From the sequence record KY555145.1: a DNA stretch of 64,000 bases, one strand, 5' to 3'. The notes under the pieces were generated by a model. The model did not search any database. It had not been told where the DNA came from and worked only from the letters and a program-made list of their open reading frames with translations. Every line of letters starts with the position of its first letter. The stretch's first letter is position 1. Shown here in pieces: positions 3,207 through 35,080 of this stretch. The translations under genes were made by a program, and so were the position numbers.

Positions 3207-3754
3207 CAGGCCCTCCGGCGATAGACCCGCACCGGGCGGGTGGGGAGGCGTTTCTCAGGCGGCTTGTAGGCGACCAGGGCATGGCTGATGCAGTAGACGC
3301 CTGCCTCGGCGCGGCATCCGCAATGGCCAAAGTCCGGCGAGTTCGGGTCGCCATAGGGCCAGCGGCACATTCCGCGCTTGAGTTCGGCCGTCGCGAACAG
3401 CCGCGCCGGGCGCGGCGGGATGACCGCCGTCCCTTCAGGGACCAGGGCGAGCTTAGGCTTGGCCGGCGGAGCGGGCTTTTCGACCTTCTTGGGCTTACGC
3501 GCCGTGGCCTTCTTGACCTTGCGGACCTGGATGCCCAGGCCGCGCGTCTTCTTGCGGCGGGCGGTCGGAGGCGGAACCTTCTCGCCCAGTTCGCCGGCGG
3601 CCTTCAGTCGGTCGGCCTTACCGCAGACGGCGCTCTTGGTGCGCGGCACGCTCAGGCGCTGACCGATCTCCTTGGTCCCGACCGGCTCCGCCCAGAGCTT
3701 CTTGAGCAGGGCGATATCCTCGTCCGGCCAGTCGGAATTCCGCTTCTTCACCAC
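3206..3754 (-). CDS. gcrA: GcrA-family cell-cycle regulator
   Basis: N-terminal WPDEDIALLKKLW...RTKSAVCGKADRL and C-terminal MCRWPYGDP...HCG...YCISHALVAY match GcrA hallmarks; AAGGAG RBS. Confidence 0.92.
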   Translation of the reverse strand: MVKKRNSDWPDEDIALLKKLWAEPVGTKEIGQRLSVPRTKSAVCGKADRLKAAGELGEKVPPPTARRKKTRGLGIQVRKVKKATARKPKKVEKPAPPAKPKLALVPEGTAVIPPRPARLFATAELKRGMCRWPYGDPNSPDFGHCGCRAEAGVYCISHALVAYKPPEKRLPTRPVRVYRRRA

Positions 3755-3761
3755 GCTTGCA

Positions 3762-3941
3762 CTACTCCTTGATCTCGACGCTCTTGGGCGGATTGGGATG
3801 AGGAACGAAGACCAGGGCCACGTCCTGACCGCCGGTATAGCGCGTGCGCCGACTGTAGAGCCAGCCGCCTTCCACCGCCAACCGCTCGGTCACCTGACCA
3901 TCGGCTTCGTCGATCTTTTCCCACTTGGACTTCTTAGCCAT
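3762..3941 (-). CDS. 59-aa hypothetical protein (MAKKSKWEKIDEADGQVTERLAVEGGWLYS...ALVFVP...)
   Basis: Hand-translated, below the ORF-track cutoff; GAGGGG RBS, ATG 3941, TAG 3762; similar to 12341..12637. Confidence 0.75.
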   Translation of the reverse strand: MAKKSKWEKIDEADGQVTERLAVEGGWLYSRRTRYTGGQDVALVFVPHPNPPKSVEIKE

Positions 3942-3962
3942 CTTCCCCTCGAATTTGGCGGC

Positions 3963-3991
3963 ACCCTAGAGGAGCGTTCGAGTGTTGACAA
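3963..3991 (-). promoter_or_regulatory. leftward sigma70-type promoter of the gcrA operon
   Basis: Minus strand TTGTCA-17-TAGGGT. Confidence 0.6.
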
Positions 3992-4017
3992 GCACCAATG
4001 TCGCTGGCTTTCGAGTG

Positions 4018-4062
4018 TTGACAAGTCCGGTGCTCGTCTATAGGGAGATCGGGACGACAACG
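4018..4062 (+). promoter_or_regulatory. sigma70-type promoter with GACGACAACG leader
   Basis: TTGACA-17-TAGGGA-6-GACGACAACG followed by AAAGGAG. Confidence 0.8.
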
Positions 4063-4075
4063 AAAGGAGCCCGCC

Positions 4076-4384
4076 ATGCGCTATGTGCTCGACTATGCCG
4101 ACGACCGGGACAAGCCGGTCTACACCGACTTCCAGGCCGGCGACCGCAAGGCGGCCATCGCCAAGGCCAAGCGCCTGCTCGCCAAGGCGATCAAGACCGT
4201 CGATTTCTCGCTCCATGGGGCCTACATCTTCGTCGATCCGACGGGCGTCGCCCGCGACGTCGACGACATGATCCCGTTCGGCATGCTGAGCACGATGGCC
4301 TACGCCAGCATCATCACCCCGTCGATGATCTCGTTCGACGACCGCGACGCCAAGGCGGCGATCGCCGCGAGGCTCGCCCAATGA
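4076..4384 (+). CDS. hypothetical protein
   Basis: ATG after AAAGGAG; 102 aa. Confidence 0.8.
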   Translation: MRYVLDYADDRDKPVYTDFQAGDRKAAIAKAKRLLAKAIKTVDFSLHGAYIFVDPTGVARDVDDMIPFGMLSTMAYASIITPSMISFDDRDAKAAIAARLAQ

Positions 4385-4593
4385 TGGATCGTCAGGACGT
4401 CAAGCCCGGCTTCATCTATCGCGGCGGCAAGAACGGTGCCCTTCGGCAGGTCGTGAGCTACGGCGCCACGCCTGACTACGTCTGCTGGGCCAATCCGCAT
4501 GATCGCTTGCCCTATGGCGGCTTCATGTCCACCACCTGCACCTCCAAGGCGTCCTTCGCCCGCTGGGCCGACAAGATCGAGGAAGAGGTCTGA
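4381..4593 (+). CDS. hypothetical protein (MMDRQDVK...), copy A
   Basis: ATGA overlap with upstream stop; duplicated at 5299. Confidence 0.8.
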   Translation: MMDRQDVKPGFIYRGGKNGALRQVVSYGATPDYVCWANPHDRLPYGGFMSTTCTSKASFARWADKIEEEV

Positions 4594-4865
4594 TGAACAC
4601 CTTTTTCCTCCGGCAGACCAAACGGGACGAGCAGGGCCGGCGCTACTTCGAGTTCGTCGATCCTGACCTGACCCAGCGCCTCTATGTCCGCAAGCCGCCG
4701 GACGACTGGTCCGAGGGCTTCCCGATCGTCCTGGAGGACTTCGTCGACGGCAAGCCCGCCGGCTCCATCATCTGCCCGGCCGGGAAGAAGCGGGGGCACG
4801 GCTTCGCGGCCTTCTTCAAGGCCAACCCCAAGGATTTCCGCAAGCTCAAGAAAGGTCGCCTATGA
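4593..4865 (+). CDS. hypothetical protein (MNTFFLRQ...), copy A
   Basis: TGATG overlap; identical protein at 5789. Confidence 0.8.
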   Translation: MNTFFLRQTKRDEQGRRYFEFVDPDLTQRLYVRKPPDDWSEGFPIVLEDFVDGKPAGSIICPAGKKRGHGFAAFFKANPKDFRKLKKGRL

Positions 4866-5128
4866 GGATTCCCCAGCCCGTCGAGTTCACCGTGGCCGAC
4901 CTCATCGCCCACCTTGCGACCCTGCCCCAGGACGCCAAGGTCGGCGTGCGCGGCGGGTTCGGGGGGTTCGGGGGCTTCCGGCCGCTCGACGAGATCGCCC
5001 CGATCGAACTCGTCACCTTCTACGGCGAGACCGACGTCGACCGCATGACGCTGGCGACCGCCGACCCCATCGCCATCAACTGGAAGGGCAAGCGCGGCGA
5101 GCCCTTCACGGCCATCATTCTCGACTAG
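4862..5128 (+). CDS. hypothetical protein (MRIPQPV...), copy A
   Basis: ATGA overlap; copy at 6058. Confidence 0.8.
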   Translation: MRIPQPVEFTVADLIAHLATLPQDAKVGVRGGFGGFGGFRPLDEIAPIELVTFYGETDVDRMTLATADPIAINWKGKRGEPFTAIILD

Positions 5129-7194: not shown

Positions 7195-7449
7195 ATGCTG
7201 ACCAAGGACGAGATCACCTTCGCGGGCCTGATCAAGGCCATGGAGGACGCCCGACGCACCGCCAAGGCGGCGGGCGATCTCGTCAGCACGGCCGAGATCG
7301 ACCGCTGGTTCAAGGAACACGCGCCGATCATCCGGGAGGTCCGCGACAAGGCCGAGGCCGACGAATTCGACGCTGGCGCGAGAGTGTTGACAACCTCTGA
7401 GGAAGGGACTAAAGACACCCTCGACGACAGCGAAAGGAGCCTGCCTTGA
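7195..7449 (+). CDS. hypothetical protein; C-terminus runs through the next promoter
   Basis: ORF track; packed in operon. Confidence 0.7.
   Translation: MLTKDEITFAGLIKAMEDARRTAKAAGDLVSTAEIDRWFKEHAPIIREVRDKAEADEFDAGARVLTTSEEGTKDTLDDSERSLP
7387..7432 (+). promoter_or_regulatory. sigma70-type promoter with CGACGACAGCG leader
   Basis: TTGACA-17-TAAAGA-6-CGACGACAGCG followed by AAAGGAG. Confidence 0.75.
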
Positions 7450-10004: not shown

Positions 10005-10502
10005 ATGACCCGCAGCACCGCCGACATCATCGCCCGCATCAAGGTCCTGGAGGAGGACCCCACCGACTTCTTCGGCTTCCAGGCCAATGATCTGGTCTGC
10101 TACCTGCCGTTCGAGGCCGCCAAGCCTTGGCTGAATGAAAACGCAACGCCCGAGGTCTGGACGCCCAACGTCAACACTCCCGAGGCGATCAAGCAGGTCA
10201 TCCTCGACTACATGGAGTTCGCCTGGGATAAGGCCAACAACCGGCGCGGCCTGTCGGCCGGGCGCTCCCTCGACCACATGAAGGCGTGGCTCTGGATGCT
10301 GGACGAGGACGCGGCCTGGGTCGCGGCCCTGAAGCTCTCCGACTACACCCACTACGGCAAGCCGCAGCTTCGCGCGATCTGCAAGCGTTTCGGCTGGGAC
10401 TGGACCGCCTGGGACGACGGCGCCTGGGGCAACAGCGAACACCGCGAAATCGACGTCAGGCCCGAGGACGTCCCCGAGGTCGGGATCGTCGAGACGGCCT
10501 GA
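10005..10502 (+). CDS. hypothetical protein (MTRSTADII...)
   Basis: ATG after GGAG. Confidence 0.8.
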   Translation: MTRSTADIIARIKVLEEDPTDFFGFQANDLVCYLPFEAAKPWLNENATPEVWTPNVNTPEAIKQVILDYMEFAWDKANNRRGLSAGRSLDHMKAWLWMLDEDAAWVAALKLSDYTHYGKPQLRAICKRFGWDWTAWDDGAWGNSEHREIDVRPEDVPEVGIVETA

Positions 10503-10524
10503 GTCCTTTCCTGGCGCGAAAGTG

Positions 10525-10571
10525 TTGACAAGGCCCTCGGACCTCCTCTATACCCACGCTCGACGACAACG
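10525..10571 (+). promoter_or_regulatory. sigma70-type promoter with CGACGACAACG leader
   Basis: TTGACA-18-TATACC-6-CGACGACAACG followed by AGAGGAG. Confidence 0.8.
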
Positions 10572-10583
10572 AGAGGAGTTCCC

Positions 10584-12344
10584 ATGGCCGAGACCATGTC
10601 CCTGAGTTTCCGGATCGAAGGCGCCGCCCTGGTGGAGCGGGCGCGCGATCGCGTCATCGAAGGTAACTGGGAGCACGGCCTGCGCATCCTGGTCGAGGGC
10701 CTGCACGGCATGTCCTACGAACTCGCGATCGACATCCTGCTTGGCAAGCACACCCTGGGCGGCTGGTCCTCGGACCCCGAGGGCGTCTATCTCACCGACC
10801 AGGACCCGGAGGACGAGACTTTCAAGCGCTACAAGGAAACCCTCGACTACCAGTTCGCCGGCGTCTTCAAGCTGGACGACGGCCGGATCATGCGCCCCTA
10901 CGCGGTGGTCGACAGCTTCTCCAAGATCGACTTCGACTCTAGGGTCCGCTTCCTGCGGCTGGCCCAGGGCTCGGACCCGGTGTTCTCGCGCCCCAAGCGC
11001 TATCACGACCCCCGCGCCGAGATCAACGGCGAGGAGATCGACTGGGCCTATCGCGCCCTGCACTACGCCGACGAGCCGACCCAGGACATCGTCCGTCTGG
11101 TCCGCATGGAGGGCTTCCACCCCACGATCCGCGCGGCGGTCCTGTTCAAGGAAGTCCGCGACTACCCCAAGCTCCTGCTCCCGAAGGTCGAGACCGACGC
11201 CCAGAAGGCCGTCGACGTGGCGATCAAGGCCCAACGCGGCCTCTCCAAGCGTGGGCACGTCTACGAGTACGGCGCCGGTCAGGACTTCGACAAGGAGCAC
11301 TACAAGACCACCATGGGGATCGATCAGGTCCCCACCGCGTGGTCCGTGCGCAATCCGAAGTACGTCGATCCCGACGCCAAGTTCGTGAAGGACACCCTGG
11401 CCGAGATCGACGGCGACAAGCGCCCGGCGCCGGCCGGTGATTACGCCGGCGCCATGAACCGGATGATCAAGGATGAGATGGACGGCGGCATGGACATCAG
11501 CGCGGCCGTCGCCATGACCCAGGCCAAGATGGCGCTGCTGGGCGGCATGGCCGAGGACCCCGAGCAGCGCCTGCGGGCGATCAACGACGCCTACGCCGCC
11601 AAGTACGAGAAGGCCGAGGGCCGCAGCGTCGAGGAGTACCGCAAGGCCATCATCGCCCAGGCCGGCGATGACTTCTTCGATCTCGCGTACACGGATGTGG
11701 ACGGCAAGGAGGTCGTCCTGAAGGTCCCGACCGCGCCGTTCGAGCAATGGGCTCTGTGGCGCACCGCCGGCGCCCATCTGGCCAAGCCCTGGAAGCGGGT
11801 GACCTACACCGGCTTCAAGACCTTCGGCGATGATCCCTACCACACCGACTGGGTGCTGGGCGCGGGGCTCAACCCCGAGGACTGGCCGATCATCGAGGCC
11901 GACAATCCGCCGCTCCACAAGGCCGCCTGGGACAAGCGCTTCCGGGTCGCCGAGGAGAAGCTGGGCGGCAACATGCGCGTCCTGCTCGGCAAGGGCTACG
12001 TGACCGGCAAGATCGTGATGCTCAAGCCGGGCGAGGCCCTGTCGCCGGGCGAGATCGGCGTGATCCGCAACGCCGGCCCTGACTACGTCCAGGCCGCCCA
12101 GAGCGCCATCGAGCACAACTCCGCCTTGATCTGCGAGAACGGCGGCAGCGTCGCCCACCTCGTGGTCGAGTACCTGGACAAGCCCCTGCGTCTGGCGCGG
12201 ATCGAGAACGCCCGCAAGATTTTCAAGGACGGCATGACCGTCTACCTCGACTTCGACAAGTCCACGCGCGAGATCGGCAAGGGAAGCCTTGGCCCGAGCC
12301 CGGCGGACCTTGGACTCGATACACAATGGGAGATTTTCGAATGA
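10584..12344 (+). CDS. 586-aa protein with C-terminal PEP-utilising-enzyme mobile (His-swivel)-like domain
   Basis: C-terminal GYVTGKIV...PGEIGVI...SALICENGGSVAHLVV...IFKDGMTVYLD follows the swivel-domain pattern; His codon at 12156. Confidence 0.7.
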   Translation: MAETMSLSFRIEGAALVERARDRVIEGNWEHGLRILVEGLHGMSYELAIDILLGKHTLGGWSSDPEGVYLTDQDPEDETFKRYKETLDYQFAGVFKLDDGRIMRPYAVVDSFSKIDFDSRVRFLRLAQGSDPVFSRPKRYHDPRAEINGEEIDWAYRALHYADEPTQDIVRLVRMEGFHPTIRAAVLFKEVRDYPKLLLPKVETDAQKAVDVAIKAQRGLSKRGHVYEYGAGQDFDKEHYKTTMGIDQVPTAWSVRNPKYVDPDAKFVKDTLAEIDGDKRPAPAGDYAGAMNRMIKDEMDGGMDISAAVAMTQAKMALLGGMAEDPEQRLRAINDAYAAKYEKAEGRSVEEYRKAIIAQAGDDFFDLAYTDVDGKEVVLKVPTAPFEQWALWRTAGAHLAKPWKRVTYTGFKTFGDDPYHTDWVLGAGLNPEDWPIIEADNPPLHKAAWDKRFRVAEEKLGGNMRVLLGKGYVTGKIVMLKPGEALSPGEIGVIRNAGPDYVQAAQSAIEHNSALICENGGSVAHLVVEYLDKPLRLARIENARKIFKDGMTVYLDFDKSTREIGKGSLGPSPADLGLDTQWEIFE

Positions 12345-12637
12345 GCGAGAAGTGGCAACCGGTTGAGGAAGCCGGCAATAACCTCTCCGGCTGGAACGTG
12401 CGCTCGGCCCAGATGGCGGTCGCCGGCGGGACCCTCTACCGGACGATCGTCTCGCGCGACAGCCAGGGCGCGGCGCCGGCGGTGAGCACCACCTTCGTCC
12501 CGAACGCCCCGCCGCAGTTCACCGTCCAGGTCACCGACGAGGACCTCCGTAGCCTTGCCGAGTGCAAGGACGTCGCCAGGGCGCGCAGCCTGTTCCGGGG
12601 CATCATGAAGGCTCACGGCCTGGAGATCATCGCCTGA
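12341..12637 (+). CDS. hypothetical protein (MSEKWQ...), similar to 3762..3941
   Basis: ATGA overlap; AVAGGTLYR...TTFVP motif. Confidence 0.75.
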   Translation: MSEKWQPVEEAGNNLSGWNVRSAQMAVAGGTLYRTIVSRDSQGAAPAVSTTFVPNAPPQFTVQVTDEDLRSLAECKDVARARSLFRGIMKAHGLEIIA

Positions 12638-12861
12638 TGCCGCTGTTCGAGCTTTCCGTCACCGCGATCCATCGCGACACCGTCACGATTGAAGCCGATA
12701 GCGAAGCGGAGGCCCGCACCCGCATCCTCGAAGAAGGCTATGCCAACGGGGACGATATCAAGTCGGTTCACCACGATGTCGATCCCGAAATCGAGATCGG
12801 CGACGCGCGCGATGTGACGGACGAGCAATGGATCACCAGCACCTCGGACGAGGAGGACTAG
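12637..12861 (+). CDS. acidic hypothetical protein (MPLFELSV...)
   Basis: TGATG overlap. Confidence 0.75.
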   Translation: MPLFELSVTAIHRDTVTIEADSEAEARTRILEEGYANGDDIKSVHHDVDPEIEIGDARDVTDEQWITSTSDEED

Positions 12862-13368
12862 ATGGCCGACTTCAGCCGCGCCCGCCGGTCCATGGAGACC
12901 GCCGACCTGATCGAGCGCCTCAAGGCCCTCTACGACCTGGAGGACGCCCGCGACATCCCGGACGAGGAGACCAAGAGCGCCTTGAAAGAGGCGGTGGTCC
13001 AACTTGGACAATTGTACGAGCAGGTCGAACTCGGGGAGACCCTCCAGAAGTCCTACCAGAACCTGATCAACTACTACAAGACCGACGCCCTGGCCTCGTC
13101 CCAGGAGCCGGACTTCAAGCGCGCGGCCTGCGAGCTTCACCTGATCGAGTCCTACCCGCCCAGGCTGCGCCTCGCGGTCGGCGGCTTCCGCAAGGCCATG
13201 GACGAGCAAGGCTTCCTGACCGGCGAGACCGGACGGGCGATCAGCCGGCTGATCAGCAAGCATCTCGACCACGATCTGGCGGGGCTGCTGGGGTCCGAGA
13301 TCAATTATTACACGCGTAAGGCTATCGCCGCCTTGCGGGGGTTGGCCCCCGAGGAGCCCAAAGCATGA
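12862..13368 (+). CDS. hypothetical protein
   Basis: GAGGAGG RBS. Confidence 0.8.
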   Translation: MADFSRARRSMETADLIERLKALYDLEDARDIPDEETKSALKEAVVQLGQLYEQVELGETLQKSYQNLINYYKTDALASSQEPDFKRAACELHLIESYPPRLRLAVGGFRKAMDEQGFLTGETGRAISRLISKHLDHDLAGLLGSEINYYTRKAIAALRGLAPEEPKA

Positions 13369-34550: not shown

Positions 34551-35051
34551 ATGGGTCTGACGGGCTGCGCCTTCGCGGCCCTGACGACCGGCTCGGTCGC
34601 CTACGCGATCGACCGTGGCGGCAAGGCGCTGAAGCTCAGCGCCTTCCTGCTGCTGGCGTCCTGGGTGTTCTCGGTCACCCTGGGCCAGACCCTGCACGCG
34701 GGCATGAAGCCCTATGTCTATGCCTGGGTCGACGCCCTGTTCGCCGGCGCGATGGGGATATTGATCTCCGCCCGGCTCCAGCGCTGGCGGGTCGCCCTCT
34801 TCACCCTGGCGATCGCCCAGATGGGCCTCCACCTGATCATGATCGGGGGCTGGGATTTCTCGCTGCACGCGCGGCGCCTCCACGTCCTGGCCCTCAACCT
34901 GACCTACGGCCTGGAACTCTTCGTCCTGACGATCGGGGCGGCGACCTATCGCGTCGAGGTCGAGGACGACATGCCGGCGCTGATCGAGACTGACGGCCCC
35001 GGACCCGGCTGGCTTGAATGTGTTGACAAAGCCAGAGAGCCCGTCCTATAA
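34551..35051 (+). CDS. polytopic membrane protein (4-5 TM)
   Basis: Successive hydrophobic segments; ATG 10 nt after the upstream stop. Confidence 0.75.
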   Translation: MGLTGCAFAALTTGSVAYAIDRGGKALKLSAFLLLASWVFSVTLGQTLHAGMKPYVYAWVDALFAGAMGILISARLQRWRVALFTLAIAQMGLHLIMIGGWDFSLHARRLHVLALNLTYGLELFVLTIGAATYRVEVEDDMPALIETDGPGPGWLECVDKAREPVL

Positions 35052-35069
35052 GCTCCCTCGACGACAACG
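35023..35069 (+). promoter_or_regulatory. sigma70-type promoter with CGACGACAACG leader
   Basis: TTGACA-18-TATAAG-6-CGACGACAACG followed by AGGAGG. Confidence 0.85.
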
Positions 35070-35080
35070 AGGAGGCCTCC

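Follow-up and report, generated by a model that had tools for sequence, protein, structure and literature searches.

A phage-restricted protein family joining a phosphohistidine swivel domain to N-terminal domains that match no known fold

Introduction

In PPDK, PEP synthase (PEPS), Enzyme I and rifampin phosphotransferase (RPH), the His of a swivel domain shuttles phosphate between two sites located on other domains. To our knowledge, swivel phosphohistidine domains are known solely as carriers of this kind, moving between an ATP-grasp domain or a PEP barrel and a substrate site. The pyruvate kinase (PK) of Geobacillus has an extra C-terminal domain, which is suspected to be a non-catalytic module for ligand sensing or interaction.

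The gene described here lies in a 64,000-nucleotide stretch of sequence record KY555145.1 (hereafter the window), which is from a phiCbK-like Caulobacter siphophage with a genome GC of 66%. The orthologue in Ccr10 (Ccr10_gp243; D865_gp179 in the phiCbK RefSeq record) is labelled 'hypothetical protein', and no function is assigned to its group, PHROG 11532. In UniProt, the orthologues of CcrSwift, BL57, CcrBL10 and Bajun are named 'PEP-utilising enzyme mobile domain-containing protein', and two Vibrio phage homologues are 'PEP-utilizing enzyme' in GenBank via InterPro IPR008279. The domain call is thus already in the databases as an automatic label and is not new as an annotation. No paper on this swivel family was found in the literature, and the description of phiCbK does not mention the gene (Gill et al., 2012; PMC3556154). 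What is new here is the analysis of the remainder of the protein, which reveals an obligate, phage-restricted architecture with unmatched domains and a second invariant site.

The Gene and Its Surroundings

The 1761-bp gene shows 100% identity to its counterparts in Ccr10, Ccr2 and Ccr29; with that of phiCbK the identity is about 97%. The GC3 of the ORF (0.92) is the composition of a real gene, and dN/dS among close relatives is 0.04-0.07. The peptide on which the swivel domain was first recognized is the exact translation of window positions 11980-12290, residues 466-569 of the plus-strand ORF at 10584-12344. An antisense ORF of 592 aa (window 10548-12326, minus strand) was considered as a gene and rejected as a shadow ORF, since its GC peaks at codon position 1 (0.92) and mirrors the GC3 of the true frame. 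The features of the locus are collected in Table 1.

Table 1. Coordinates of the gene, its protein domains and the flanking elements in the window.
Feature	Position	Strand	Remarks
Target CDS, 586 aa	10584..12344	+	1761 bp; Ccr10 gp243 / phiCbK D865_gp179 orthologue group; PHROG 11532
Family-specific N-terminal region, residues 1-230 (sub-parts 1-120, 155-230)	10584..11273	+	alpha/beta; pLDDT about 90-98; in 22/22 viral loci
Variable helical insert, residues 231-345	11274..11618	+	partly low-confidence model
Conserved middle domain, residues 346-462	11619..11969	+	highest conservation in the family; pLDDT about 95
Motif K412-x3-D416-D417-P-Y-H420-T-D422	11817..11849	+	in middle domain; candidate second active or metal/phosphate site
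Phosphohistidine swivel (PEP-utiliser mobile) domain, residues 463-566	11970..12281	+	sequence profile and fold
His525 codon, predicted phospho-acceptor (GGSVAHLV)	12156..12158	+	aligns with catalytic His of PEPS and RPH
Promoter-like element (TTGACA, spacer, CTATA)	10525..10552	+	inside the 81-nt gap that precedes the target gene; 3 in window vs 0 expected
Leader with ribosome-binding site, GACGACAACGAGAGGAG	10562..10578	+	5 nt ahead of target ATG; 3 window matches, all shortly before an ORF start, vs 0.12 expected
Cassette copies	4018-4075, 10525-10583, 35023-35080	+	chance expectation 0-0.12 matches
Downstream ORF, 98 aa, gp244, PHROG 12291	12341..12637	+	ATG overlaps target stop (ATGA)

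The promoter-like element and the leader belong to a near-identical cassette of about 60 nt that precedes at least three plus-strand ORFs, starting at 4076, 10584 and 35081, all with a coding signature. The cassette consists of GTGTTGACAA, a spacer and TCTATA or CCTATA, followed by CGACGACAACGA-RR-GGAG, 5-6 nt and the ATG. The leader also occurs without the rest of the cassette at 7423-7439 (plus strand), before the ORF at 7446. The cassette looks like a shared class of phage promoter plus 5' leader, a prediction from sequence. The putative promoter unit that the gene was proposed to head is made plausible by this recurring element in the upstream gap. The downstream ORF, gp244, is probably on the same transcript because its start overlaps the stop of the target gene; next to distant homologues of the target gene this neighbour is not conserved. 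All neighbours in the window are without known function. The following gene, gp245 (74 aa, PHROG 12843, window 12637-12861, plus strand), shows a sub-threshold match to DpnD/PcfM-like proteins (PF14207, E 8e-4, 19.8 bits vs a cut-off of 25).

RNA-seq runs contain a relative 96-97% identical, in the form of assembled contigs of flat depth, which bear on the presence of the region in RNA libraries and not on promoter or timing. In these assemblies, which are probably of phiCbK, window positions 10405-10506 and 12803-12862 are replaced by 96 and 191 unrelated letters, respectively. Both stretches are intergenic or small-gene and the flanking genes are collinear, which points to local replacement hot-spots beside the target gene. 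Ccr10 coordinates (offset 1583) yield no valid minus-strand ORFs at window positions of about 3700-5000, and hence the window is not collinear with Ccr10 upstream of the target gene; it may derive from Ccr2 or Ccr29, in which that gene is identical. Because coordinates of the Ccr10 record do not transfer there, a strand mis-annotation suspected near window position 4076 was rejected.

The C-Terminal Swivel Domain

The C-terminal domain is homologous to the swivels of PEPS, PPDK and RPH, and its catalytic His is invariant. Searched singly, the target protein gives little: Pfam finds no match on the full-length protein, PF00391 included, phmmer against PDB sequences finds nothing, and on the C-terminal 153 residues PF00391 scores 13.3 bits (E 0.064), below the cut-off of 23.1 bits. 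Within the family, PF00391 is matched by 94 of 96 diverse homologues at E<=0.1, with scores of up to 44.9 bits; the homologues above the threshold come from a collection of 5.8 billion proteins and from Vibrio phages. A profile of 22 family members matches PEPS (E 7e-11), RPH (E 1.5e-10) and the C-terminal domain of Geobacillus PK (E 2.5e-9). The swivelling beta/beta/alpha fold is present in the model, where RPH is the best fold match and the PK C-terminal domain the second, the latter with the highest identity (29%; 26-29% for the two). His525 and G520 are kept in all 160 aligned family representatives, which share about 25-35% mutual identity. The initial annotation had staked its domain call on a match to the mobile domain and on a His conserved in homologues, and the family profile, the PF00391 matches and the fold on the one hand and the alignment on the other bear out both.

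The residues around the His are less regular. The family consensus is GG-x-[LMV]-A-H-L-[AV] vs GG-x-T-S-H-A-A, and the PROSITE-type signature is missed by five positions in the target protein, in line with the deviation noted earlier, and by 2-5 across the family. Such flanks say little, since genuine RPH-like comparators fail that pattern as well. The phiCbK clade has also lost the Arg-Glu that follows the motif, with L531/D532 in place of an Arg found in 101 of 160 representatives and a Glu found in 132 of 160.

Among swivels, that of the phage protein groups by sequence with PEPS, PPDK, RPH, PigC and the PK C-domain. Enzyme I is matched by fold only, with 6-11% identity, and no Enzyme I sequence model was matched in the family profile and NCBIfam searches. 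In the model the swivel is contiguous: the helical subdomain with which Enzyme I binds HPr, and which interrupts its swivel, is missing. On these grounds the idea that the protein taps host PTS or PTS-Ntr signalling and ppGpp, or acts as a decoy for it, finds no support. The more general part of that proposal, a role in phosphotransfer, is the most reasonable reading of the domain and its conserved His.

The likeness to PK raises the alternative that the swivel is non-catalytic, a ligand-sensing or protein-interaction module in a regulator or structural factor. The rank and identity of the PK domain among the fold matches, the departure of the His-motif flanks from canonical enzymes and the lack of any donor-binding fold in the searches would agree with such a role. 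However, His525, G520 and a cluster of Lys, Asp, His and Asp in the adjacent domain are conserved over 160 divergent representatives, as catalysis would predict, and the protein is absent from the described phiCbK virion proteins (PMC3556154). We consider a non-catalytic role quite unlikely.

The N-Terminal Domains

The approximately 460 residues ahead of the swivel form three parts. The N-terminal region carries the near-invariant residues R21, G54, P105, D116, Y161 and P195. The helical insert that follows varies from 12 to 133 aa across the family; it has 12-50 aa in most members and 115 aa in phiCbK-like phages, among the longest, and looks dispensable for the conserved core. In the middle domain, where G-x precedes the motif that starts at K412, H420 and D422 are present in 160 of 160 representatives, D416 in 159 and K412 in 156, and this cluster may have a catalytic role. 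The model of residues 1-462, built from 141 sequences, has a mean pLDDT of 84.8 and a pTM of 0.68. That of the whole protein has a pTM of 0.40, which is too low to read domain packing or a contact between His525 and H420. An internal duplication of the N-terminal and middle domains was considered and rejected (probability 0.2%).

These domains match nothing outside the family. Across 96 family members Pfam finds PF00391 alone, with no ATP-grasp (PPDK_N, PF01326) and no PEP/pyruvate TIM barrel (PF02896). The matches of NCBIfam models of PEPS, RPH, PigC and PK are confined to the swivel, and the protein stops about 20 residues past it. With the whole protein, PADLOC, PHROGs, NCBIfam, Pfam and PDB sequence searches return nothing beyond the swivel, PADLOC giving no match at all. 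The best Foldseek match of the 1-462 model in the PDB has an E of 1.4, and searches of AFDB clusters, the ESM atlas and BFVD yield family members alone, although single domains within a 462-residue model can be missed in such searches. Pfam, NCBIfam, Foldseek and VIA thus agree with the initial annotation that neither an ATP-grasp nor a PEP-binding barrel is recognizable.

One lead to a known substrate domain was followed. A language-model feature search weakly pointed to clusters of PF27448 (Rph_4th), with scores of 0.79-0.89. The comparator family was built from a 538-aa protein of Bacillus cereus plasmid p1, whose relatives carry PF27448 and PF00391. At the sequence level the lead was rejected, since hhalign probabilities stay below 1% when the Rph_4th part is compared with residues 1-462, 1-232 and 346-462, and structure searches do not rescue it. 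The Rph_4th part of the B. cereus family has an invariant D-H-H-F-x-I-D motif of its own.

This bears on the possibility that the protein is an RPH-like small-molecule kinase, a truncated relative of RPH or PigC acting on, for example, an anti-phage metabolite, with a very divergent Rph_4th-like substrate domain as its N-terminal part. RPH is the best structural and one of the top sequence matches of the swivel, which is C-terminal in both proteins, and bacterial 'Rph_4th + swivel' subunits of 540 aa, a similar size, exist; the feature search adds to these. However, profile-profile alignment joins the two families through the swivel alone (probability 98%), precomputed Pfam hits show PF27448 for the bacterial family and never for the phage family, the N-terminal model matches no RPH structure, and there is no ATP-grasp partner. 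An enzyme of this type is improbable.

Distribution and Gene Neighbourhood

An exhaustive profile search returned at least 656 cluster representatives with the full architecture at E<1e-30. Named carriers are Caulobacter phages (the phiCbK group and Seuss), Brevundimonas phage Bajun, several Vibrio phages, among them a 57-kb siphovirus and VAP7-like Ackermannviridae, and an enrichment-culture virus. Uncultured carriers include viral contigs of 43 to 578 kb, megaphages among them. In 185,579 prokaryotic genomes (one per species), a single search pattern of limited sensitivity matched two MAG contigs. The arrangement of N1/N2, middle and swivel domains is retained in 22 of 22 viral loci; an apparent short form with the middle and swivel domains only (P0108) was rejected as a contig-end fragment. 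Purifying selection keeps the four-part architecture as a whole in this large family, which is almost confined to phages. Since its carriers infect Caulobacter, Brevundimonas or Vibrio or are uncultured megaphages, the family is not tied to hosts with PTS-Ntr.

Clustering of the ORFs within 6 kb on either side of 23 loci revealed no gene family common to distant members. A tblastn search of 50,697 phage records with a PPDK_N protein gave nine hits, none of them in Caulobacter or Vibrio phages. The target gene behaves as a stand-alone module, since it has no shared neighbours and these phages have no PPDK_N gene. The 'phage' records that do bear PPDK_N (OR848170, OR846811, CAKLQH020000004 and others) are short Listeria 'phage' fragments, gut-virome contigs and 232-305-kb contigs of 'Acinetobacter phage MD-2021a' with a ppsA annotation; they look like host DNA filed as phage and not like phage-encoded dikinases.

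The missing partner can also be sought in the host. The protein might be a carrier or interceptor acting in trans, with His525 charged by PEPS/PPDK, Enzyme I-Ntr or NPr~P of the host, and the N-terminal domains passing the phosphate to a target chosen by the phage; or it might drain or block the host relay. A protein with neither ATP-grasp nor PEP barrel, in phages of Caulobacter and Vibrio without a detected PPDK_N gene and with no conserved partner at the 23 loci, is what such a carrier would look like, and bacterial split systems exist in which a separate ATP-grasp protein adjoins the swivel-bearing subunit. However, those systems keep the ATP-grasp gene adjacent, which is not so at the phage loci. 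The swivel is of the PEPS/RPH/PK type and not of the Enzyme I type, and there is no helical subdomain for HPr or NPr. Moreover, many host enzymes would have to fit, as the carriers are phages of unrelated hosts and megaphages. A role in trans appears unlikely.

Proposed Function

We favour a phage-specific, self-contained phosphohistidine-relay enzyme, and give this reading a probability of about one half; the activity and the location of both half-reactions in cis are what we infer. It fits three observations: the His is invariant, the adjacent domain holds a further invariant cluster of Lys, Asp, His and Asp, and no partner gene is evident. His525 on the C-terminal swivel would be charged with a phosphoryl (or pyrophosphoryl) group at one site, the putative donor being ATP or PEP, and would then hand it over at a second. 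The family-specific N-terminal domains would supply these two sites; the strongest candidate for one is the K412/D416/H420/D422 cluster of the middle domain, which lies shortly before the swivel. This cluster and the conserved N-terminal residues would be expected if the carrier serves sites in cis. The donor site in cis is one that we infer purely, as neither profile nor structure searches recognized a nucleotide- or PEP-binding fold in residues 1-462. The acceptor would most likely be a small molecule or nucleotide-like metabolite handled during infection. The low pTM of the whole-protein model and the loss of the Arg-Glu pair in the phiCbK clade count against a self-contained relay.

More tentatively, the family may represent a new class of phosphotransfer enzyme that combines a canonical swivel with two previously unseen catalytic domains, one of them built on K-x3-D-D-x2-H-x-D. 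Its use to phages, in takeover or counter-defence, would be to phosphorylate some molecule of their own or of the host, for example a macromolecule, a metabolite or an immune signal derived from nucleotides.

The family pairs a kept carrier domain and its His with domains that match no known fold. If the protein is active, it would bring a new donor or acceptor chemistry for a swivel carrier and a new enzymatic function of phages, from 43-kb siphoviruses to megaphages of more than 500 kb. An inactive protein would instead be a clear example of a catalytic carrier domain that has been turned to another purpose. The genetic tractability of phiCbK and Caulobacter puts a direct test within reach.

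Comparison with Known Systems

PEPS and PPDK consist of a PPDK_N ATP-grasp, a central swivel and a PEP/pyruvate TIM barrel. The phage protein is without the first and the last, its swivel is terminal, and its His motif reads GG-x-[LMV]-A-H-L instead of GG-x-T-S-H-A. PTS Enzyme I and EI-Ntr contain a helical subdomain that binds HPr or NPr and a C-terminal PEP-binding barrel, both of which the phage protein lacks. Of the domains of RPH (RPH-Lm; PDB 5HV1/5FBS), the N-terminal ATP-grasp and the rifampin-binding domain are detectable in the phage protein neither by sequence nor by fold; the C-terminal swivel with its catalytic His is common to both proteins. In the PK of Geobacillus stearothermophilus (PDB 2E28), the extra domain is appended to a complete pyruvate kinase, whereas the phage swivel is appended to unmatched domains.

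Split RPH/PigC-like enzymes are found in natural-product clusters of Bacillota. On B. cereus plasmid p1 (NZ_CP045607.2; L032:1157-3761), such an enzyme is encoded between an NRPS and a thioesterase/PPTase, a placement that hints at ATP-dependent tailoring within a pathway for a non-ribosomal peptide. It comprises a 332-aa PPDK_N protein and a 538-aa 'PEP-utilizing enzyme' with Rph_4th and swivel domains. The ATP-grasp gene is adjacent in the split enzyme, whereas the phage gene has none nearby (23 loci) and none was found in Caulobacter or Vibrio phages. The N-terminal parts of the two proteins are unrelated (probability below 1%). However, the phage protein resembles the 538-aa subunit in its size, its large N-terminal part and its C-terminal swivel, which hhalign aligns with a probability of 98% and an E of 8e-14.
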